From IMG/VR virus record IMGVR_UViG_3300024336_000005, positions 62,001 through 126,000 of that record: 64,000 nucleotides of DNA. One strand, 5' to 3'. Of the stretch, positions 12,843 to 59,297 are shown piece after piece; the stretch's first letter is position 1, and every line of letters starts with the position of its first letter. The position numbers and the translations under genes were made by a program. The notes beneath the pieces were generated by a model. The model saw nothing but the letters and a program-made list of their open reading frames with translations, was not told the origin of the DNA and did no database searches.

Positions 12843-13640
12843 ATGTTCGATTTGCAGAACGAGAAGACCGCCGTTGAGACCACCGCCCCGTTCCGGAAGG
12901 TGCTCGCCACCGGCGAGGTCCAGCCCGTGTCGTTCGCGGGATTCGTCGAGAAGACGGAGGATGGTGGCTACCAGTTGCAGGAGACGCTGGACATCGAGAC
13001 CTGCATCGGGGTGCTGGGCTTCGCCGCTGCGGTGAAGTTCAACCAGCACACCAACGACGATGGCACGACCACCATCCGGGTGTCGGCCATCCAGGAGGGT
13101 AACACGAGCAAGAAGCGGCAGCGTGGTGACAGCCAGCGCACGAGCAAGGGGGCGAGTGAGTTCGGTCTCGGGACGTGGGTCTTCGCGACTCGGCTCGAGG
13201 TGCCGGGGCTGGATGTCGGCTCCATCCACACCTGCTACGGGACCATGGGCGAGGCGACGGTCTCCACCCCCAATGGCCCGGCCTTCACCGCCTCCAAGCC
13301 CGCCTTCGCGGGTGCGTTCGAGCAGGAGGTGACCAAGGCGGTGCAGCTGATGCTCTCGTCCTTCGTGGGCGCCGCCAGTGGTGGTGAGAGCATCGTGACC
13401 AACGACGAGGGGCTCATGGACACCCTCCGTTGGTTGCAGCGTGTGGTGCCGAACAAGTTCGGTCGTCTGGTCTTCCAGGGGGCCGCCTTCGAGGGGGCAA
13501 CCAACACCAGCCGCGTGAAGGCCGTCATCAACGGCAAGGAGGTCCAGGTGGCGCAGTCCACCAAGGGCTCCAACCGCGTCAAGACCGCCTCCAAGGCCAC
13601 CGCCTCGGACCTCGACGCCCTCGCGGCGCTCGAGGCCTAA
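12843..13640 (+). CDS. hypothetical protein
   Basis: ORF with strong codon bias, RBS aaagga. Confidence 0.85.
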   Translation: MFDLQNEKTAVETTAPFRKVLATGEVQPVSFAGFVEKTEDGGYQLQETLDIETCIGVLGFAAAVKFNQHTNDDGTTTIRVSAIQEGNTSKKRQRGDSQRTSKGASEFGLGTWVFATRLEVPGLDVGSIHTCYGTMGEATVSTPNGPAFTASKPAFAGAFEQEVTKAVQLMLSSFVGAASGGESIVTNDEGLMDTLRWLQRVVPNKFGRLVFQGAAFEGATNTSRVKAVINGKEVQVAQSTKGSNRVKTASKATASDLDALAALEA

Positions 13641-13809
13641 TCCCACCTCCCTGAAGTCCGGTGAGTCGTTCCCTACGGGTTGAGCGACTCCCGGCAACCT
13701 CCCCTTGTTTATCTTTGTTGTTGATATAGGTGTGTATGAACGTAGTGTACGACTGTTGTTGTACCCTATGGGCATGCACACCTGTGTATGTTGGCAGACA
13801 GGAGTGTGT

Positions 13810-14379
13810 ATGAAGATTGCCATTATTGGCACCGCTGGTAGGAGCAAAGCTCCGCAGCATCGGATGACACGGAAATTGTATGGCAGCATGTTGGATGCTG
13901 CCTGGCAGATGATGTTGAAGAACTGTGAGGATTGGAGTGATGTGACACTTCAGTCTGGTGGAGCCGCGTGGGCTGACCATGTGGCTGTGAGCGCCTATAA
14001 GCTGGCATTGGTGTGTGGAAAGCCCTTCAAGGGGCTGAACCTGTACCTGCCGGCCCCCTTTGATGGGGACAAGTACGCCGCCACTAAGGCGGGTGGTATC
14101 TCCAACTACTATCATCGGCTTTTCACGCAGGCCGTTGGAACAGACACTCTTGTGGGGTTGGCTGATGTCATGCAGCTGCCCGGTGTGATGGTGGATGTTG
14201 GAGTGGGGTTCCATCAGCGGAACCTCGAAGTTGGGAAGGCTGACGTCCTGTTGGCCTTTACCTGGGGCGAAGGCAGCGGCCCCGCCGACGGTGGCACGAA
14301 GCACTGTTGGAAAAATTCTCATGCGCCGACGAAGGTGCACTTCAAGCTCTCTGAGCTGAACGGACAGTCCGATGAGTGA
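13810..14379 (+). CDS. SLOG/YspA-like Rossmann nucleotide-binding protein
   Basis: MKIAIIGTAGR, SGGAAWADH, RN...AFTWG...GGT motifs. Confidence 0.6.
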   Translation: MKIAIIGTAGRSKAPQHRMTRKLYGSMLDAAWQMMLKNCEDWSDVTLQSGGAAWADHVAVSAYKLALVCGKPFKGLNLYLPAPFDGDKYAATKAGGISNYYHRLFTQAVGTDTLVGLADVMQLPGVMVDVGVGFHQRNLEVGKADVLLAFTWGEGSGPADGGTKHCWKNSHAPTKVHFKLSELNGQSDE

Positions 14380-23868: not shown

Positions 23869-24487
23869 GGGGGTGTCAGGTTTCGACAGGGTATAAATAG
23901 GAAGCGATAGCAGGTCCCGCTAAGAACGGCAGCGGGTTAGAAAGCAAGTTCAAATTGTAAACGGCAACGTAAACAACATGGCGGTGGCTGCCTGATAGCT
24001 TCCCTTCGGGGAATCTATTGGTAGTGCATACCCTCTAGTCTCTGAGTTAGACCTCTTTAAGTAAGGGCTAGAGTACGTGAAATTGAGGAATCGGACAAAG
24101 AAAAGTCCAATGTCGAGTGGATGGAAACTGAAGCTTCGTAGCTGCTTGCAGATACGAGATTGGGAACGTGGTAACACGTACAAGGATAAGCCAAACTAGT
24201 TGCGGAAGACCTCCTTGATGGTTAAGAGCTACCCGCTGACAGTAAACTCATCAAAGGAAATCGTATTACTCTTTTGATGAACCTATAAGTACGAACCTCC
24301 CTGGTTGTTTCTACCATGAGGGGAGTGAGAAAACAGAGCAAGGCGCAGCTTGGGGCCGACAGGAGTTAGCCTCAAGTGGAGTGGCAAGTGCAAATCCTCT
24401 CATTTGTTTTCATCTAAATGAAACTAAACCTGTAGAAGTTGTATTTCGAAAATGTTCTGGACGGGAGTTCAATTCTCCCCACCTCCA
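23869..24487 (+). ncRNA. ssrA: tmRNA (unusually long, 619 nt)
   Basis: 5' GGGGGTGTCAGGTTTCGAC, tag ORF 23957-23995 (A)VNGNVNNMAVAA*, 3' CTAAACCTGTAG...GGACGGGAGTTCAATTCTCCCCACCTCCA. Confidence 0.9.
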
Positions 24488-24808
24488 CATTTCTTCACGC
24501 TGAGTGGCCGTGCTGATTGACGGCGGCTGAAAGCAAACGCAATAAACTACTCGCGCGCTTGGGTTAACCAACCGGAATCAAACAGGATACTGTTCGCGCG
24601 AAATCGGTTAGCCAGCCCTAATAGGTAGTGAGCGTTTGTAGAAAGTGTCTTAGACGGTATGTCAGGGAAGGTACAACCTGGACTCCGGATAGGCGTGAGG
24701 TGGTTCAGGGTTGTAGGTAAGAGAACGGAAAAGGTAATCTGAAAACGCCTTTCTGAAACCCATAAACCTAACAAAGGGGAGCCCGAGTGGTGCAAGCAGC
24801 CCCCAGAG

Positions 24809-24950
24809 AGTTGAAAAGCTAGGCTCTCCAGTTTCTCATAACTTATAGCTCTAGCTTAAGTTCTAGAGCGCGCCCTCCGAAGGTTGAGATTTGGGTGTAA
24901 GAATCCCAAGAGCTATAAGTTATGAAAAATTAGAGCCTAGCTTTTCAGTT
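24809..24950 (+). ncRNA. degenerate tRNA-like core (loop CTCCGAA) inside a long inverted repeat
   Basis: TTGAAAAGCTAGGCTCT..TCATAACTTATAGCTCT pairs with AGAGCTATAAGTTATGA..AGAGCCTAGCTTTTCAG. Confidence 0.65.
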
Positions 24951-25039
24951 TCTGACATAGAGTAACCCTGGCCCGGGGAAATACAGGGCTTGAGTGATCC
25001 GATAAATGGGTCCTGACTTTAACCTCTATGTCGATTAGA

Positions 25040-25170
25040 CGTGCCAGCTAACCACTGGCTAGTGGGAGTGGCGAGAATCCCACGATGAGAAGCGGAGTCG
25101 TTTCCGTAAAAAAAGCCCCGGACCTCGGAGAGGTCGGCAATCTTCTGTCGTTAGTCCCTAAACCATGGAG
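25040..25170 (+). ncRNA. structured ncRNA, copy A (copy B at 36471-36614)
   Basis: conserved blocks with compensatory stem changes between copies. Confidence 0.7.
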
Positions 25171-26215
25171 TAGTGTGATGAGAGGCTTGCCTCAGTGATT
25201 CACAGTTATCGATGAAGTGGAGGGGATAGAGAAGCTGTGGTGTGCAGCCATAGTGGCTTGGGGTTTTAACCGCGAAGCCAAATTTCTGCCCCACCAATAG
25301 GGTAAAAATGGGATGCTTGGTGATCATCTAAAACATCCTTGAGCTATGCAGTATGCTCAAGCGCCCGCCTGGGTAATCCAGTGGGTTTAGAGAGGACATG
25401 GTGCTCCTCCTGGATACATAGCCATAAAGCCTTATTGGTTGGAGGCGGCTGTGTAATACCGACCACAATACTAGATAGTAATTTAATGTTGGAGCAACTT
25501 TCTAGTTACAGTTGCTCCCGTCTACTAGCGACGAATATAAACCGATTATGCTAGTTAAATCGGAGAATTAGGCCCTTCGGCGGTAGGAGTTCCCGCGTGG
25601 TCACTGTGCTTTTATACCCACAGACTACATATATGGATTGGGCCATTTTACCAGATGATCTGTCCCGGCAGATGCATAGGCAGCCACCTCGTTAAAAACT
25701 GGTACCGGGCACTATCTTGCAGTGGAAGCTCTTAGACCTCCGATATAAAGGGGGATTAGGTAAATCTTAGGTGCCTAAGTTAGCGAACCTGGAAGCGCCC
25801 CACGGGCAGGACTTAGCCATCCCTCATGGTGAAAGCACAAGCTGAGGGGCTTGTGTTGGTTCAATGTCTCTACACCGTTCCTGCCGGTTATGCAGGAGAG
25901 TGTTGTGAGTTCCGTGTGAGAACTCTCATGTGTGGCTGGCATTAATTGATAAGCGGGTAGAGTCGCTTATCAACAGCTCTCGACGCGGGCGAGTAAACAG
26001 AGGGGTTGCTCCTTCTGCCCGCACTCTTCTGTTCCGTCTGTAGGGTAAAAGCAGCGGGCCCGATTGGTGGGCTACGATATAATACGGACCAATTGAGGTT
26101 GGGAATCTTAAACAACAAGCTCTCGAAATTACAGAATCAGAGAGCATTCCTCTTGGCCTGGCAAGTTAAGAAGCTTAGCGGCTTCAACCAGGACCTTTTC
26201 TACAAGGAAAAAGAA

Positions 26216-29225: not shown

Positions 29226-29421
29226 TAGGAGTTGAGATCCAGTTCCCGTCGGGGTGCCTACTGGTTAAACAAAAAGGCTCGATGAGTAGACTTGTGTCTG
29301 GAGAGACTCCGCCGGTTCGAGGCAGACGGTGCTCAAAGCCTCCCTTTTCTTGGAGAGTGAGATGGTTAAACTAATAGGGCATGTCCCTGAGACAAAGAGG
29401 GGTCCCTTTAGGCGCAATACA

Positions 29422-30105
29422 ATGGAAGCTAAGGTAATGGAAACTCGACAGGAACGTCATGAGAGACATCTCAGGACGATGAGAGCGTATTTGGCAGGAG
29501 GGGAGAATTTCCTGGCCGCCAAGGCTCTCCAATTTGCAAAGAATCTAATGACAGGACTAAGGAAGGATGGGGAAACTCCAGCCTTCCACCATCCCCTGTC
29601 GGTGGCTCGCTACTTACGAGCTCACCGTCGTAGTCTTATTTATGGAGAGGAGACCATTGCGGCTGCCTTTCTTCATGATATCCTCGAAGACTTTGGTGAT
29701 ACTGTCACTAGAGAGCAACTTAGAGACCTGTTTGGGGAAAGAGTAGCGACTGCCGTATGGGCTCTCAGCAAGAAGAGCAACGGAACGTCAAAGACTCCCG
29801 ATACCTACTTCATGGGCATTGCATCTAATGAGATTGCATCTGTTGTGAAGGCTGTAGATCGATTGCACAATCTCCACACCATGGAGGGCGTGTTCTCTGT
29901 TGAGAAGCAATTGGACTACATCAAAGAAGCAAGAGATAGATTTATCCCCATGCTTATCGAAGCAGGAGATAGGTTTCCCGAACAGTTTGATGTCTATGAA
30001 AACCTCAAGATGAACTTGAGGCTTCAAACCATCCCGATGGAACGACTGTGCGAAGCTTTGATGAGGCTAAAAGATGAAGTTCGAAGCGGTGATTGTCGAG
30101 GGTGA
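29422..30105 (+). CDS. RelA/SpoT-type HD-domain hydrolase (small alarmone hydrolase-like)
   Basis: HPLSVA, AAFLHDILED, VKAVDRLHNLHTM. Confidence 0.8.
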   Translation: MEAKVMETRQERHERHLRTMRAYLAGGENFLAAKALQFAKNLMTGLRKDGETPAFHHPLSVARYLRAHRRSLIYGEETIAAAFLHDILEDFGDTVTREQLRDLFGERVATAVWALSKKSNGTSKTPDTYFMGIASNEIASVVKAVDRLHNLHTMEGVFSVEKQLDYIKEARDRFIPMLIEAGDRFPEQFDVYENLKMNLRLQTIPMERLCEALMRLKDEVRSGDCRG

Positions 30106-32836: not shown

Positions 32837-33616
32837 ATGAAACCCACTTATATTGTTGGAGACGTTCATGGATGTCTCCGAGAGCTTCAGACACTTCTTT
32901 CTCTTATCTTTCAAAAGATTGGTGCCAATCCAGGGACTATTGTCTTTGTTGGTGATCTGATTGACAAGGGGCCTGATAGCCTCGGATGCCTTCGTCAGGT
33001 CAAAGACCTACAGAAGTATCCGATGGGGATTGAAGTCGTCTTCGTCATCGGCAACCATGAGGATAAGTTGATCCGTTGGTTGCAGCACGAGCAGAAGATT
33101 GATCTGGGTCTTGCTGTAACTAATCCCATTAAGGCATTGCCTGAGTGGGATGCAGCCATGAGGACATGGGGGCTCAAGCAAGGTGGCCTTAGGTGGCTAC
33201 GTTCCTGTCCTATGTCTTGGTCTTCCGGTAATGGTAAGTACCATGTAGTCCATGCTGGGATTGAGCCCAAAAGGAAAGCAATTCCAGTTTGCCCCTGGCT
33301 TGAGGCCAAGGGCAAAGACAAGACTGTCTTCTTTACTCGGTATGTGAACCCTGAGAAGGGTAAGATGGTAGCACTTGGTCAGGAGGTTTTTCCTCGTGAC
33401 AAGTGGTGGGGTGAGCTTTATGATGGCCGTTTTGGTACTGTCATCTATGGACATCAGCCCTTTGATGAAGTTCGACGAGATGCCCATGCAGTAGGCATTG
33501 ATACCTCTTGTGTTTATGGAGGCTGCCTGACTGCATATGATCCAACTACTGGAGAGACTCTTGAGGTGAAGGCCTTTGATGTCTATTCAGAGAGAATGAA
33601 AGACTACCCTTCATGA
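32837..33616 (+). CDS. calcineurin-like metallophosphoesterase (ApaH/PrpE/Pnkp type)
   Basis: GDVHG, GDLIDKG, GNHE, VHAG, YGH, IDTSCVYGG. Confidence 0.9.
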   Translation: MKPTYIVGDVHGCLRELQTLLSLIFQKIGANPGTIVFVGDLIDKGPDSLGCLRQVKDLQKYPMGIEVVFVIGNHEDKLIRWLQHEQKIDLGLAVTNPIKALPEWDAAMRTWGLKQGGLRWLRSCPMSWSSGNGKYHVVHAGIEPKRKAIPVCPWLEAKGKDKTVFFTRYVNPEKGKMVALGQEVFPRDKWWGELYDGRFGTVIYGHQPFDEVRRDAHAVGIDTSCVYGGCLTAYDPTTGETLEVKAFDVYSERMKDYPS

Positions 33617-33652
33617 TTAAGTCTTTCTTAATATAATTCTGCAAGGAACAAG

Positions 33653-34711
33653 ATGAGTGATTATCCAGATGGAACCATTATTGTAGGTCTCCAGGATGGA
33701 GACGAAAGCAAGGGAAAGGTGGCGGCGGCTCTTTGTTCGCTACCGCAAGTGACCCATTGTGTTCGCTATAGTGGTGGACAGAATGCAGGCCATGTTTTCT
33801 ACAAGGATGGCCTACAGGTTGTCACTCATATCATTCCCTCTGGGATTGTATATGGGAAGGTCTCGGTGATTGGTCCTGGCTGCGCCTTCTCTGAGAAGGG
33901 CTTCTGGGCTGAGCTAGAAGACATTTGTGATGCACTGGGGGAGACCATGTTGAATCTCTCTCGCTTGATCAAGATCTCCCCTGCTGCTCATATCGTCCAG
34001 GACAAGCACATCGTTTTGGATGAGGCGACAGACAAGATTGGATCTACCAAGAGAGGGATCGCCCCAGTCTATGCCGATAAGGCTATGAGGACGGGCATCC
34101 GAGCCGAGAGCATTCCAAGCCTAAAGCCTTTCTTGTGGGATACGACTAAGCTCAATGACCCAAAGAATGTCATCGTATTTGAAGGGGCTCAAGGCTTTGG
34201 CCTTGATCCTGATGTAGGAGATTATCCCTATATCACCAGCTCCTCCTCTCTCCCTGGTGCGATCAACAATGTTGGTGTGCCCATCTGGGCAATCAATAAG
34301 ATTGTTGGAGTTGCAAAGCTCTATGCGACCTATGTTGGGACCAAGGAATTCGAGCCAGATCTAGAGATTTTCTCAAAGCTTCGTGAGCTCGGAGGGGAGT
34401 ATGGCTCGACCACAGGCCGTCCTCGACAGTGCAACTGGTTGAATCTTGATACTCTCATCACTGCTATTCGAACCTGTGGTTGTACTACGGTCGTCTTCAG
34501 CAAGTGCGACATCATTGAACAGCTTGGCGTTTTCAAGTTGATTGATGGTGGTACAGTTCGAGAGTTCGGGAATATGGCTGGCATGATTGCTCACATTAAG
34601 CGAGAGCTTAAGGAGGAGGCACCAAGTACAAGTCTAATCTTTAGTGGCAGTCAATACACAGTTGAAGATGACTATGGCCATCTTGCTGAAGAGCCGATGG
34701 GAGAGATTTGA
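33653..34711 (+). CDS. purA: adenylosuccinate synthetase (short form)
   Basis: GDESKGK, GGQNAGH, GSTKRGI, FEGAQG, YPYITSS, EYGSTTGRPR. Confidence 0.9.
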   Translation: MSDYPDGTIIVGLQDGDESKGKVAAALCSLPQVTHCVRYSGGQNAGHVFYKDGLQVVTHIIPSGIVYGKVSVIGPGCAFSEKGFWAELEDICDALGETMLNLSRLIKISPAAHIVQDKHIVLDEATDKIGSTKRGIAPVYADKAMRTGIRAESIPSLKPFLWDTTKLNDPKNVIVFEGAQGFGLDPDVGDYPYITSSSSLPGAINNVGVPIWAINKIVGVAKLYATYVGTKEFEPDLEIFSKLRELGGEYGSTTGRPRQCNWLNLDTLITAIRTCGCTTVVFSKCDIIEQLGVFKLIDGGTVREFGNMAGMIAHIKRELKEEAPSTSLIFSGSQYTVEDDYGHLAEEPMGEI

Positions 34712-34784
34712 TGTCCTCGATTACAGAGGGTATTCTTGCTAGGCTGATGGAGAAGCCTGGCAAATTTGAAGGAGAATTCTGAAT

Positions 34785-36146
34785 ATGTACCAAGCAATTG
34801 TTGCCAACATTCACACCCGTCCACATCCGGGAGCTGATCGAATTCAGCTAGGAACTGTATGTGGCCATCAGGTTGTATGCGGGCTTGACATTGCTGATGG
34901 TACTCTCGGTGTGTTCTTTCCTTGCGATGGCCAGCTAAGTCATGACTTCTGTGTGGCCAATGATGAGTACCCTCGGCTTGATGAACAGGGGAAGAAGGTC
35001 GGTGGCGGATTCATCAATCCTAAGAACCGTCGCGTAAAGGCACAAAGCTTTCGTGGTGAAAAGTCGGATGGCTACTGGGTTCCAATGGATAAGCTCATTA
35101 AGTGGGCAAATCATGTTTGGCGCGAGGATGACAAGGGAGACCATGTCCTCTTGTCCAACCGTGTGCAGAGCCTTGTAGAAGGTGACACCTTTGATTCCGT
35201 TGGCGATGTGCCTTTGTGTAACAAGTATGTAACTGAGAAGACCCTTAAGGCTCTTCAGAATCAGGCCAAGCAGGCTCGCAAGACTCATACTCAGTTCGCT
35301 CAGCATATTGATACCAAGCAGTTCCGATACAACATTGGAAACATCCCGGAGGGTTCCATTGTATGGATATCTGAAAAGCTTCACGGTACTAGCGGTCGCT
35401 ATGGGTACGTTCAAGCTCTTCGTGAGCTCGGTGGCCGTTTTAATGCTTTTGTTCGCAGGGCTTTTGATTGGTGCGCTGATAAGCTTGGTCTTGATGTAAG
35501 CCCTAAGTATGAACATGTTATGGGCTCACGAAGGGTTGAGCTCTCTGCTCAGTCAGAAGGGTTTTACGGCTCGATAGATTTCCGTGCAAATGTAGCAAAC
35601 AAGTTGAAGGGAAATCTCCTCAAGGGTGAGTGCATTTATGGAGAGCTAGTGGGTTGGACTGGTCCTGATTCTTTGATCATGGGCCGCCACTCAACCAAGA
35701 AGCTCGGCAAGGAGCTTCGCAAGCAGTACGGAGAAGAGGTCACCTATACTTATGGACAGCCAAACGGTTGTTCTGAGTTCTTCGTTTATCGAATCACTCG
35801 TGTTGGCCCAGATGGTCAGACGATTGAGCTCGGTGAGCGTGAGATGCGGGCAAGGGCGAGGGTCCTCGGCTTCAAGACTCCAGAGCTCTTTGCGGGGCCG
35901 ATGGTAGTTCACGACTATGCTGATGATAAGTGGGTCGATGGTGGCAAGACGCTCATGCAGGTCGTGGAAGCCTACCTAAATGGACCATCGATTGAAGACT
36001 CACGACATCCTCGAGAGGGCGTCGTGATTAGGGTTGACAGGCCTGACGGGACTACCATCTGGCTCAAGGACAAGAACCATCCGTTCAAGGTAATGGAGGG
36101 TATCGCTAAGGATTCCGGCGAAGCAGACATGGAAGAAAGCTCATGA
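34785..36146 (+). CDS. ATP-dependent RNA ligase, Rnl2/DRB0094-like with N-terminal OB fold
   Basis: HPGADRI, EKLHGTS (motif I), YGELVG, FFVYRI, REGVVIR, LKDKN. Confidence 0.85.
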   Translation: MYQAIVANIHTRPHPGADRIQLGTVCGHQVVCGLDIADGTLGVFFPCDGQLSHDFCVANDEYPRLDEQGKKVGGGFINPKNRRVKAQSFRGEKSDGYWVPMDKLIKWANHVWREDDKGDHVLLSNRVQSLVEGDTFDSVGDVPLCNKYVTEKTLKALQNQAKQARKTHTQFAQHIDTKQFRYNIGNIPEGSIVWISEKLHGTSGRYGYVQALRELGGRFNAFVRRAFDWCADKLGLDVSPKYEHVMGSRRVELSAQSEGFYGSIDFRANVANKLKGNLLKGECIYGELVGWTGPDSLIMGRHSTKKLGKELRKQYGEEVTYTYGQPNGCSEFFVYRITRVGPDGQTIELGEREMRARARVLGFKTPELFAGPMVVHDYADDKWVDGGKTLMQVVEAYLNGPSIEDSRHPREGVVIRVDRPDGTTIWLKDKNHPFKVMEGIAKDSGEADMEESS

Positions 36147-36466
36147 AAGCATTCTTATTTGTAATGATAGTGCTTTTGTTTGGCTGTGGTTCCACCTCGA
36201 CGCTAAGTCCGTTTGATAGTTCTATCAACAATCTGTTTAAGACTGTTGAAGATTCTAAGACGACGCTCAAACTTGAGACCATTCAGTGCCAACATAAGGA
36301 GACCCAAAGGAATACAACTTGTATTGTAAGGGCCTTCCTTTCGGACGGCACTCCCTTTCAACTGTCCTTAGAGTGTCCAACTGTACCCGGTGAGCTATGT
36401 GCGGTTACTGCACAGGCTCCAACTACTTCAGTTCAATCCAACCCAAGGGGCGGCTTGAGCCTATAG
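36143..36466 (+). CDS. putative lipoprotein
   Basis: lipobox LFGC. Confidence 0.7.
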   Translation: MKAFLFVMIVLLFGCGSTSTLSPFDSSINNLFKTVEDSKTTLKLETIQCQHKETQRNTTCIVRAFLSDGTPFQLSLECPTVPGELCAVTAQAPTTSVQSNPRGGLSL

Positions 36467-36470
36467 GATG

Positions 36471-36614
36471 CGTGCCGATTAACTACCGGCTAGTGGGGGT
36501 GGCGACAAGCCCCATGATTGAAGCAGGCTAGTTCCTGTCCATTAGCTTACGCTATAGACGCCCCGAACCTCGGAGAGGTCGGATTTGCTGTTATCGTTAG
36601 ACGTTACCATGGAG
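36471..36614 (+). ncRNA. structured ncRNA, copy B of 25040-25170
   Basis: CGTGCC..GGCTAGTGGG.GTGGCGA.AA.CCCA.GA..CCCCG.ACCTCGGAGAGGTCGG..TCGTTAG..ACCATGGAG shared. Confidence 0.7.
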
Positions 36615-36650
36615 GTTGTTCCTTTGAAGTGTGTACGTCAAACAGCGCCT

Positions 36651-40772: not shown

Positions 40773-42416
40773 ATGAACTACGGTAAGACTGTTAGCAACG
40801 CTATCAACAATGGTCCAGTTTCTCAGCCTATCATCGGTAGGCCCGAGATGGTAAAGAACAGCACTGAGGGCTTTGTCTTCAACACCACTTCTGAGGCAGC
40901 GCTTGAGCGCTTCCTCATTCTTGGCACTGAAGGCGGCACTTACTATGCCAGCGAGAGCCGAGCTACAGTTGATGCGGCAAAGAATGTCATCGAGATGGCT
41001 GTTGCTGGCAACGTAGATGTAGTCAGTACCATCATCAAGGTCGCTACTGCTCGTCCCTCTCGTGCGCCAAAGATGGAGCCTTCCTTGTTTGCTCTTGCAG
41101 TTTGTACCGCAAAGGGCACCCCCGAGGTAAAAGCTAAGGCGCTCAGCGCGCTGAGCGCGGTTTGCCGTATCCCCACTCATCTGTTTACCTTTCTTCAGGC
41201 CCACAAGGATCTGGGAGGCAAGACCGGTGGGCGCAGCTTCCAGCGAGCCCTACAGAATTGGTATCTTGAGAAGGATCCCTCTAAGCTGGCTTATCAGGTT
41301 GTGAAGTATCAGGGGAGGAATGGCTGGACTCACCGTGATGTTCTTCGGCTTGCCCGCCCTAAGGCTCAGACCCCTGAGCAGAACTCTATTTTGAGTTGGG
41401 CTGTGAATGGTTCGCTGCCTCTGGCAGTAAGTTCTGAAGCGGGTGCTTATCTTGTGGCGGCGAATGAGCTGCTGCGAGGGGAGCCGACGAAGCAGCGTGC
41501 AATCAACTTGATTGAGTCTCATGGGTTCACCCATGAGATGGTTCCGACTAAGCTTCAGAAGGACCCTGATATCTGGGCAGCTTTGCTTCCCCGCATGCCT
41601 ATCAATGCAATGGTTCGCAACCTTGGTCGGATGACTGCCAATGGTCTGATTGTTCCATTCAGTGCCACAACTCAGAGCGTGGTGGAGAAGCTTGAGAATG
41701 TGGATGCCCTTCGCAAGAGCCGCATCCATCCGCTCAACGTTTACGTGGCCTTGCGTACCTATCAGCAGGGCAAGGGCACTCGAGGTTCGTTGACTTGGCG
41801 TCCTGATGCTCAGATCTTGAGCGCACTAGAAGGAGCATTCTACAATGCTTTCGGGAATGTAGAACCGACTGGTAAGCGCTTCATGGTGGGCCTGGATGTA
41901 AGCGGCAGCATGGGTGGATTCTATGGCTACGGCTATAACAGTACTGTGAACCAGACTGGCCTTATGGGGATTCCTGGGTTTACGCCTTATGAGGCAGAAA
42001 CCCTTATGTCCCTTTTGGTTGCAAAGACTGAGAAGCAGACCTTCTTTGGTGGGTTTTCAGACAACTTCACTCCCCTTGCTATCAACTCCCGTGATAACAT
42101 GAGCTCGGCTCTTCAGAAGATCCGATCACTCCGCATGGGTTCCACTAGGATTGCTGCTCCGATGGAGTATGCCACCAAGAACAGGATTCCGGTGGATTGC
42201 TTCCAGATCTACACCGACAATGAAGTGAACATGGGCGGACATCCTTGTCAGACCCTTGAGAAGTATCGTCAGGCTACTGGCATCAATGCGGCCATGGTCG
42301 TATGCGCTATGACCTCTACGAATTTCACTGTGGCCGACCCGAAGGATCCGAAGCAGCTTGATGTTGTTGGATTTGACACGGCAGTGCCAGCTTTGATTCG
42401 ACAGCTTTTGGTGTAA
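40773..42416 (+). CDS. rsr: Ro60/Rsr TROVE-domain RNA-binding protein
   Basis: LERFLILGTEGGTYY, KYQGRNGWTHRDVLRLARP, VRNLGRMT, IHP, vWA MIDAS DVSGSM, YTDNE, DVVGFD. Confidence 0.97.
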   Translation: MNYGKTVSNAINNGPVSQPIIGRPEMVKNSTEGFVFNTTSEAALERFLILGTEGGTYYASESRATVDAAKNVIEMAVAGNVDVVSTIIKVATARPSRAPKMEPSLFALAVCTAKGTPEVKAKALSALSAVCRIPTHLFTFLQAHKDLGGKTGGRSFQRALQNWYLEKDPSKLAYQVVKYQGRNGWTHRDVLRLARPKAQTPEQNSILSWAVNGSLPLAVSSEAGAYLVAANELLRGEPTKQRAINLIESHGFTHEMVPTKLQKDPDIWAALLPRMPINAMVRNLGRMTANGLIVPFSATTQSVVEKLENVDALRKSRIHPLNVYVALRTYQQGKGTRGSLTWRPDAQILSALEGAFYNAFGNVEPTGKRFMVGLDVSGSMGGFYGYGYNSTVNQTGLMGIPGFTPYEAETLMSLLVAKTEKQTFFGGFSDNFTPLAINSRDNMSSALQKIRSLRMGSTRIAAPMEYATKNRIPVDCFQIYTDNEVNMGGHPCQTLEKYRQATGINAAMVVCAMTSTNFTVADPKDPKQLDVVGFDTAVPALIRQLLV

Positions 42417-42886: not shown

Positions 42887-43080
42887 AAGAACTGATGTAA
42901 GAAGATTATCACAACTATAACGGCCCTAAGGTAGCGAGAGTCGGGCGACCGATGTTCCGCAATATAGACTCCTAATTCTCCAGTAGAATAAGAGTACGTG
43001 CTCAATGCCGTATCCCACTTTGTGGAGCGGTAATAGCGGCAGGGGTTCAACCCCTATTTCTTCTTCAACTCTTTGTTCTT
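42887..43080 (+). ncRNA. putative Y RNA 1
   Basis: 5' AAGAACTGA pairs with 3' TTGTTCTT; AAGAAGA/TCTTCTT upper stem. Confidence 0.7.
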
Positions 43081-43923: not shown

Positions 43924-44012
43924 GCCAGATGATGACCTAATTGGATAGGCGACACACTGTGAATGTGTTTGGCGAAAGCCTTTAGCGGGTTCGAATCCCG
44001 TCATTTGGCCCA
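43924..44012 (+). tRNA. trnH: tRNA-His(GUG) with long variable arm
   Basis: G-1:C73, ACACA-CTGTGAA-TGTGT, GGC-GAAA-GCC extra arm, CCA. Confidence 0.88.
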
Positions 44013-50780: not shown

Positions 50781-50868
50781 CTAGCGAGCGGGCGGTGGAC
50801 GCCCAACCGTGCTGTACAGCGGTGGTGCTTTGATGCACAACTGGGTTCGATTCCTAGGCGCTAGACCA
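50781..50868 (+). tRNA. Tyr-like class II tRNA with 8-nt anticodon loop
   Basis: ACCGT-GCTGTACA-GCGGT, GTGC..GCAC arm, 5-bp D stem, ACCA. Confidence 0.65.
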
Positions 50869-59164: not shown

Positions 59165-59297
59165 TCTGGTGTCGCTTAATGGTAGAGCAGGCGGCTGTGG
59201 TTTATTGCAAGGGCATTACAAGGGTCTTAACCTTGGTAGGCCTCATAACCGCCCGGGGGAAACTCCATTGTAGGTTCGACTCCTACCACCAGAGCCA
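59165..59297 (+). tRNA. interrupted tRNA (Asn-like) with 47-nt insert in anticodon loop and long variable arm
   Basis: TCTGGTG/CACCAGA, G73, CCA; GGCGG-CTGT[59199-59245]TAA-CCGCC. Confidence 0.75.

Follow-up and report, generated by a model that had tools for sequence, protein, structure and literature searches.

Organization of the locus

We analysed a 64,000-nt stretch of phage DNA (the window), bases 62001-126000 of a 204,008-bp IMG/VR virus record that is rated complete. The window belongs to the genome of a 204-kb marine jumbo phage, and the DNA runs that bear it are seawater metagenomes. The + strand carries all of the RNA genes detected in the window (26 tRNAs and a tmRNA) as well as every ORF of at least 250 aa that is not nested within a longer + strand ORF. 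Two copies of a structured RNA element, the only two in the 204-kb genome, are found in this block (Table 1). Because tRNAs, tmRNA, repair genes and a Ro60/Rsr homologue share the same block, the element sits in a phage translation and RNA-repair island.

No + strand ORF of 60 aa or more was found around copy 1 (24491-25338). A long, nearly perfect hairpin (inverted repeat of ~116 nt, 24822-24937) lies between the tmRNA and copy 1 and has no RNA-library coverage. Copy 2 begins 5 nt past the stop codon of the ORF that precedes it and ends 4 nt before a tRNA-Ser gene (36651). Directly upstream of copy 2 is an RNA-repair-like row of + strand genes (32837-36466), made up of the phosphoesterase, the PurA/PurZ-like enzyme, the RNA ligase and the 107-aa ORF. 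The tmRNA, 622 nt against the 374 positions of the model, has an insert of ~340 nt where the model has 104, and was missed by ARAGORN. Three odd tRNAs (50781-50868, 59165-59294 and 43925-44012) comprise a four-base anticodon call (tgta), a 130-nt match to the tRNA model with a possible intron, and an 88-nt tRNA-His.

Table 1. Coordinates of the RNA element, its parts and neighbouring genes in the window
Feature	Position	Strand	Remarks
tmRNA	23869-24490	+	Rfam match, 622 nt
Copy 1, whole RNA as inferred	25040-25234	+	Core 25040-25158 plus 3' domain
P1 hairpin	25043-25059	+	GCCAG, 7-nt loop CUAACCA, CUGGC
J1/2	25060-25061	+	UA, invariant in 19/19
P2 hairpin	25062-25083	+	GUGGGA/UCCCAC, 6 bp; loop starts with GUGGCGA (25068-25074)
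J2/3	25084-25091	+	Purine joint of GA..GAAG type; GA right after P2 invariant, GAAG nearly so
P3 hairpin	25092-25107	+	GCGGA, loop GUCGUU, UCCGU
J3/4	25108-25121	+	A-rich run, then AGCCCC; GCCCC at 25115-25119
P4 hairpin	25122-25134	+	ACCUC-GGA-GAGGU; CUCGGAGAG invariant
P5 hairpin	25135-25150	+	CGGCA, loop AUCUUC, UGUCG
3' domain	25151-25234	+	J5/6 UUAG, P6 (likely), inner hairpins with UGGAG...GAAG
P6, copy 1 (likely)	25155-59 with 25222-26	+	UCCCU with GGGGA
Pseudoknot, copy 1 (tentative)	25142-46 with 25230-34	+	CUUCU with AGAAG
RelA/SpoT-type hydrolase	29329-30105	+	
Pnkp-like phosphoesterase	32837-33616	+	
PurA/PurZ-like enzyme	33653-34711	+	Adenylosuccinate synthase relative
RNA ligase	34785-36146	+	phrog_968
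107-aa ORF	36143-36466	+	No match; directly before copy 2
Copy 2, whole RNA as inferred	36471-36646	+	3' end set by P6/pseudoknot
Extra small hairpin	36543-36554	+	UAGC-UUAC-GCUA; in J3/4, copy 2 only
P6, copy 2 (likely)	36600-04 with 36635-39	+	GACGU with ACGUC
Pseudoknot, copy 2 (likely)	36587-92 with 36641-46	+	GCUGUU with AACAGC
Ro60/Rsr homologue	40773-42416	+	NF041674, E 9e-127

The two copies belong to a family with a five-hairpin core

A sequence-only reading of this DNA had proposed a duplicated noncoding RNA of ~135 nt with compensatory base changes between the copies. The stems that it described are present in both: P1 reads GCCAG/CTGGC (25043-47/25055-59) in copy 1 and GCCG/CGGC (36474-77/36487-90) in copy 2, P2 reads GTGGGA/TCCCAC (25062-67/25078-83) and GTGGGG/CCCCAT (36493-98/36510-15), and P3 reads CGGA/TCCG and CAGG/CCTG. 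Both copies have the same ACCTC-GGA-GAGGT hairpin and the same GTGGCGA loop. The duplication thus stands and the length does not, since P5 and a 3' domain extend the RNA to ~25234 and 36646; for copy 1 this 3' limit is set by the assignment of P6 and the pseudoknot described below. Covariance-model scores were 128.7 bits (R1) and 114.2 bits (R2) for copy 1 (25040-25158), and 110.6 bits (R1) and 92.1 bits (R2) for copy 2 (36471-36604), in which J3/4 carries a 14-nt insertion relative to all other members. The copies are ~64-67% identical to each other (BLAST E 3.8e-6), no higher than their identity to homologues in other phages; they are therefore paralogues of long standing or were acquired separately.

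We scanned for patterns drawn from the invariant parts and filtered the matches with covariance models, which, once duplicates had been removed, left a family of 19 distinct sequences from 29 loci. The helices are kept through compensatory changes in the 17 further distinct homologues, and the covariation of P1-P5 across all 19 sequences bears out the proposal of a selected, structured noncoding RNA. Standard pairs occupied 96.5% of the cells of the 19-sequence alignment, compared with 35-50% when the partners were slid by 1-3 columns. Changes on both sides were observed for 19 of the 26 pairs, and none of 500 shuffles reached the observed values. RNAalifold, run without an imposed structure, returned the same 26 pairs.

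The core runs in the order P1, UA, P2, GA..GAAG, P3, an A-rich run with AGCCCC, P4, P5 and U-(N)-A-G. P1 is a 5-bp helix whose 7-nt loop follows the pattern N-U-N-R-Y-Y-A in the family; every pair of P1 (5/5) and of P3 (5/5) changes on both sides somewhere among the members. P2 is paired in 100% of cells, with both-side changes at 3 pairs. The outer two of the five P4 pairs covary (AU/GC, CG/UA), and the inner three and the GGA loop never vary. A longer P4 with a CCG...CGG extension was initially considered and was replaced once more sequences came in, the extension being the base of P5. P5, which RNAalifold predicts independently, changes on both sides at 4 of 5 pairs and has a variable loop. 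The loops and joints that do not vary are UA, GUGGCGA, GA..GAAG, AGCCCC and CUC-GGA-GAG. GUGGCGA at the start of the P2 loop is invariant in 19/19 sequences, and the GCCCC of J3/4 occurs in 18/19, the remaining one having GCUCC. The invariant U23-A24 and G53-A54 could extend P2 by a U-A and an A-G pair, and the GCC of J3/4 may pair with the GGC of the P2 loop.

Seventeen of the 19 sequences have G-U at pair 25-52, where the other strand would give A-C. Since the G-U pairs fit the + strand only, the RNA is encoded on this strand, and the tRNAs near the element, wherever present, share its strand. Our confidence is high that the family is genuine and phage-specific, that it is under selection and that its RNAs adopt the P1-P5 fold.

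A variable 3' domain with a likely pseudoknot

Conservation runs past P5: in most members the joint is followed after 7-20 nt by UGGAG, and this in turn by a hairpin and GAAG. A layout script required P6 to start 2-6 nt after P5 and to be followed, after 0-3 nt, by a segment that can pair with the P5 loop. This arrangement (J5/6, P6, 0-3 nt, pseudoknot) fitted 13 of the 17 testable sequences and gave total RNA lengths of 158-220 nt; very often a single A separates P6 from the pseudoknot. Close relatives are the best evidence for a pseudoknot. L023 and L054 (loci are given by L numbers) are 92% identical over 180 columns, and ~9 of the ~21 columns that differ fall in the P5 loop or the 3' segment, where GUGGUG/CACCAC is matched by UGAGCGG/CCGCUCA. 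Changes in the P5 loop and the 3' strand likewise match between L039/L056 and L022. For the 13 fitting sequences, between 0 and 52 of 100 per-sequence shuffles reached the observed layout score, and a test of cognate against non-cognate pseudoknots gave p=0.078. The pseudoknot has only 3-4 bp in the subgroup of L028, L025 and L062. Because these statistical controls are weak, we regard P6 and the pairing of the P5 loop with the 3' end as likely, with moderate support.

The 3' stretch of L060 (CUAGUGGAG...AUGAAGC) resembles the P2 module. In addition, ~60-110 nt past the core, L060 and L061 have another partial module (GGAGAGGCCCCCGUAUGUGGAGCUAUGAAGC) that repeats the part from P4 to UGGAG and suggests an internal duplication.

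The family is found in uncultured phages

Members were recovered from five further IMG/VR lineages and from many marine metagenome contigs (TARA and other ocean and sediment samples). A survey of 185,579 prokaryote species (one genome each) gave 11 pattern matches and no member, and blastn of GenBank phages with both copies gave chance matches only. Within reach of these searches, uncultured and mostly marine phages are the only carriers of the RNA. A pattern for the 3' half only (GCCCC-N4-CTCGGAGAG-N2-CG) brought back known members, with no new member and none without the 5' motifs. As this search found no member without GUGGCGA, the invariance of the 5' motif is not only a product of the search pattern. 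Several candidates were rejected: L087 is partly similar and is not a member, L004, L007, L008 and L035 are chance pattern matches, and L019 matches the pattern without a covariance-model match.

The sequence-only reading had not recognised the family, and the Rfam search that it called for agrees. At gathering thresholds Rfam 15 detected only tRNAs and the tmRNA in the whole window, and at E<=10 nothing matched over either copy. The RNA family is previously undescribed; its kind is already known, namely orphan structured phage RNAs, often beside tRNAs. It may stand anonymously among the 10,006 viral structured-RNA candidates of PMC10690425.

Genomic context of the members

Same-strand tRNA genes were present in the fetched flanks of 7 of the 19 variants, and the remaining variants lie between small ORFs. 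The element is located within a phage tRNA cluster, on the tRNA strand, in the window and at L005/L006, L025, L036, L038, L042, L016 and L018. At L025 it fills the gap between a tRNA-Tyr gene (ending at 323, 4 nt before the element) and a tRNA gene with a CUA anticodon (starting at 528, 9 nt after the pseudoknot), so that a tRNA gene follows 4-9 nt past the 3' end of the RNA at two loci, L025 and copy 2. L028, L036 and L038 carry the identical RNA sequence in differently arranged tRNA arrays. In a complete phage of 56.8 kb the element is found 3 kb from the left end, among small ORFs taken to be early genes.

No ORF within 4 kb of the element was shared among 21 loci, and no protein family was common to the six carrier genomes compared (42-62% GC, 57-207 kb). 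Searches of other carriers found neither Rsr (six records) nor the RNA ligase of the window.

The tRNA arrays of two carriers contain CUA-anticodon tRNAs, which are amber suppressors (L025 528-601; L016 8661-8734, the same as L062 4168-4241). These may point to TAG recoding in those phages. In the array of L006, a 152-aa ORF on the - strand (13391-13849) adjoins a tRNA-His gene (13312-13386) and by eye looks like an HNH-type homing endonuclease.

The element is present in an RNA library

Lack of expression had been named as a ground for giving up the sequence-only reading. Part of the region is represented in one seawater metatranscriptome (X13), in which a 171-nt contig matches the element (25042-25212, starting one base before P1); the element is thus present in an RNA library. 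Contigs from X13 also cover the tmRNA, while 24588-24981 and most ORF stretches are empty; in the DNA run X10, unlike X13, every bin has depth. The X13 evidence consists of contigs, which give neither ends nor strand and could include DNA carry-over. Real transcripts are favoured because the coverage is patchy and centred on RNA genes. Just downstream of copy 1, X13 has a 344-nt contig (25300-25643) with a word depth of 17, above that of the element. It overlaps a doubtful 71-aa TTG ORF, and no homologue was found at other loci.

Possible roles of the RNA

We favour, tentatively and at somewhat less than even confidence, the reading that the element is a stable RNA which is cut from longer polycistronic transcripts (tRNA or early ones) and has a conserved cellular factor as its target in trans. 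The RNA would be part of a long + strand transcript that also contains the neighbouring tRNA genes and ORFs, and would be released from it at least partly by tRNA-trimming enzymes: RNase P would cut at the 5' end of a following tRNA, and 3' tRNA trimming would act where a tRNA precedes. Such tRNA-linked processing cannot be general, since only 7 of the 19 variants have tRNAs in the fetched flank. The RNA would then persist, folded and stable. Its five hairpins, in which sequence drifts and pairing is kept, would be joined by the invariant single-stranded nucleotides and followed by the variable P6 domain, probably locked by the pseudoknot. The invariant nucleotides may build a tertiary core, through which the RNA would serve as binder, decoy or scaffold for a partner that possibly belongs to the machinery of translation, tRNAs or RNA quality control. 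We infer trans action on a conserved cellular partner because no phage protein travels with the RNA and its carriers are otherwise unrelated phages. This anatomy would also be compatible with a cis role (antitermination or stabilisation of the transcript) or with catalysis.

A ribozyme, self-cleaving or other, might for example help to cut long tRNA transcripts, and small ribozymes beside phage tRNAs are known (the HDV-like theta ribozymes). Invariant joint and loop nucleotides around covarying helices, together with the likely pseudoknot, give the element a complexity typical of ribozymes and riboswitch aptamers; catalysis would need no phage protein, and the element abuts tRNAs in two loci. 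We nevertheless consider a ribozyme decidedly unlikely. No Rfam 15 ribozyme model matches, including those of the self-cleaving classes (HDV-like/theta, hammerhead, twister, twister-sister, pistol and hatchet), and the row of simple local hairpins is unlike the topology of HDV, twister, hammerhead, pistol or hatchet ribozymes. Most members are not beside a tRNA, and the X13 contig spans nearly the whole element unbroken. That contig is a separate piece whose flanks are empty, which points towards a stable RNA cut out of its transcript. It also speaks against a cis-acting element, which might render RNA polymerase resistant to terminators in the manner of put or shield its own transcript from nucleases. 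Such a role too would need no phage protein. It would suit an element that is always encoded on the strand of the surrounding genes, within long blocks that run in one direction, and that in the 57-kb phage lies among presumed early genes; the presence of two copies in a single long block, 11 kb apart, would also be understandable. The element is, however, 2-3 times larger and far more elaborate than the HK022 put RNA, and neither a sigma-70 promoter of its own nor a terminator was found beside it on the + strand, which leaves a cis role distinctly improbable. A riboswitch or protein-binding leader for a downstream gene is more improbable still, given that the genes downstream are unrelated between loci, with no constant gene family, and that the next gene is a tRNA in several of them; the conserved core could be an aptamer, and L003 has a Shine-Dalgarno sequence and an ATG ~40 nt past the element. 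We give hardly any credence to a signal acting as DNA, or to an antisense terminator formed by P4 and the A-run read on the - strand. A scan does call a terminator-like site there (25130-25116, - strand), but the A-run is not conserved across the family (AAAACAUA in L023), the five helices covary, the G-U pairs fit the + strand only and the RNA-library contig covers the element.

The Ro60/Rsr homologue suggests a partner. As a Y RNA-like molecule, the element would contact Ro60 through the GGCGA of the P2 loop and would tether or gate a phage or host Ro60 ring, as Y RNAs do with PNPase. The proposed Ro60 contact of bacterial and phage Y RNAs is GNCGAA(N)G or CGAA, and these RNAs lie within ~4 kb of the Ro60 gene on the same strand (PMC4201824, PMC12135203). 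Copy 2 is 4.1 kb upstream of rsr on its strand, and the Rfam search revealed no recognisable Y RNA beside the rsr of the window. In a Thermus phage the Ro60 gene is preceded by two Y-like RNAs (PMC12135203), and in the window too two copies lie upstream of rsr. Against this, six other phage records that carry the RNA, one rated 100% complete, lack Rsr. The element also has no stem joining its 5' and 3' ends, and L025 leaves 4 nt between the preceding tRNA and the element; its motif, GGCGA-N (CGAA in one member only), is part of a hairpin loop; and no tRNA-like T or D arm was detected (the tRNA model and ARAGORN gave no match over the element). We therefore consider a Y RNA-like role quite improbable, on a level with the cis-acting one. 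The GGCGA loop and the nearby rsr gene still allow for a functional link to Ro60. A candidate Y RNA beside rsr (42905-43065) folds no better than shuffles and was rejected; by eye, this segment ends in a terminator-like hairpin (GGGG-UUCAA-CCCC and then a U-rich run). We noticed no sizeable gap between ORFs upstream of the Ro60/Rsr gene.

Beyond the excised, trans-acting RNA that we favour, a bolder version, which we consider unlikely, is that the family is a new functional RNA class that works without a phage protein. It would work as a ribozyme or else bind tightly to a universal cellular machine, and unrelated marine phages would exchange it and use it to gain control of host RNA metabolism or to weaken defences that target RNA. 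For a tight binder the machine could be the ribosome, RNase P, RNA polymerase, tRNA 3' ends or Ro60-type quality control. It is rare for an elaborately folded RNA with an invariant core to have no assigned function, and RNAs of this sort have repeatedly proved to be ribozymes, riboswitches or parts of machines that had not been known. The ~120-nt core is small enough for probing, crystallography or cryo-EM. The RNA is common to phages that share almost no proteins and occurs in the tRNA/RNA-repair islands of jumbo phages, whose purpose is debated; its partner, once found, could explain how such phages handle host translation, RNA repair or tRNA-directed defence.

Comparison with known RNAs

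The Y RNAs (YrlA, Yrl1/2) resemble the element in being small and structured, often in two copies, near a Ro60 gene on its strand, with a motif of the G-N-C-G-A type. They differ in having a terminal stem with the Ro60 site and a tRNA-like domain, whereas the element carries its motif in the P2 hairpin loop. By published criteria, then, it is not a Y RNA.

The tRNA mimics (skipping-rope, DUF2693-FD and salivarius-1) are small RNAs, processed and stable, that contain a 5-bp hairpin capped by a 7-nt loop. P1 is like this hairpin in both respects, and its loop has a U-N-R turn. The core of these tLRNAs is an acceptor-like helix of 5-8 bp joined gaplessly to a 5-bp hairpin with a 7-nt UUYRANY loop. 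In the element no acceptor helix adjoins P1 and the loop pattern is different, so we rejected membership.

GOLLD and ROOL are often found beside tRNA genes. Like the element, they are orphan, elaborately folded RNAs of phages and prophages (PMC12286853). They are ~600-800 nt long against the 158-220 nt of the element, which does not match their Rfam models, and nothing in it suggests multimeric cages.

In position the element resembles the species 1 and 2 RNAs of T4 (rnaC and rnaD), small stable RNAs of 119-139 nt located in the phage tRNA cluster, on the tRNA strand and beside a tRNA. The likeness lies in place and strand, not in family: with filters off, the best R1 score over the T4 tRNA region was only 8.7 bits, and rnaC by eye ends in a tRNA-like T arm and acceptor, which the element lacks. 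Stable RNAs in phage tRNA clusters have been a puzzle for fifty years, and the present family provides a second, better conserved case.
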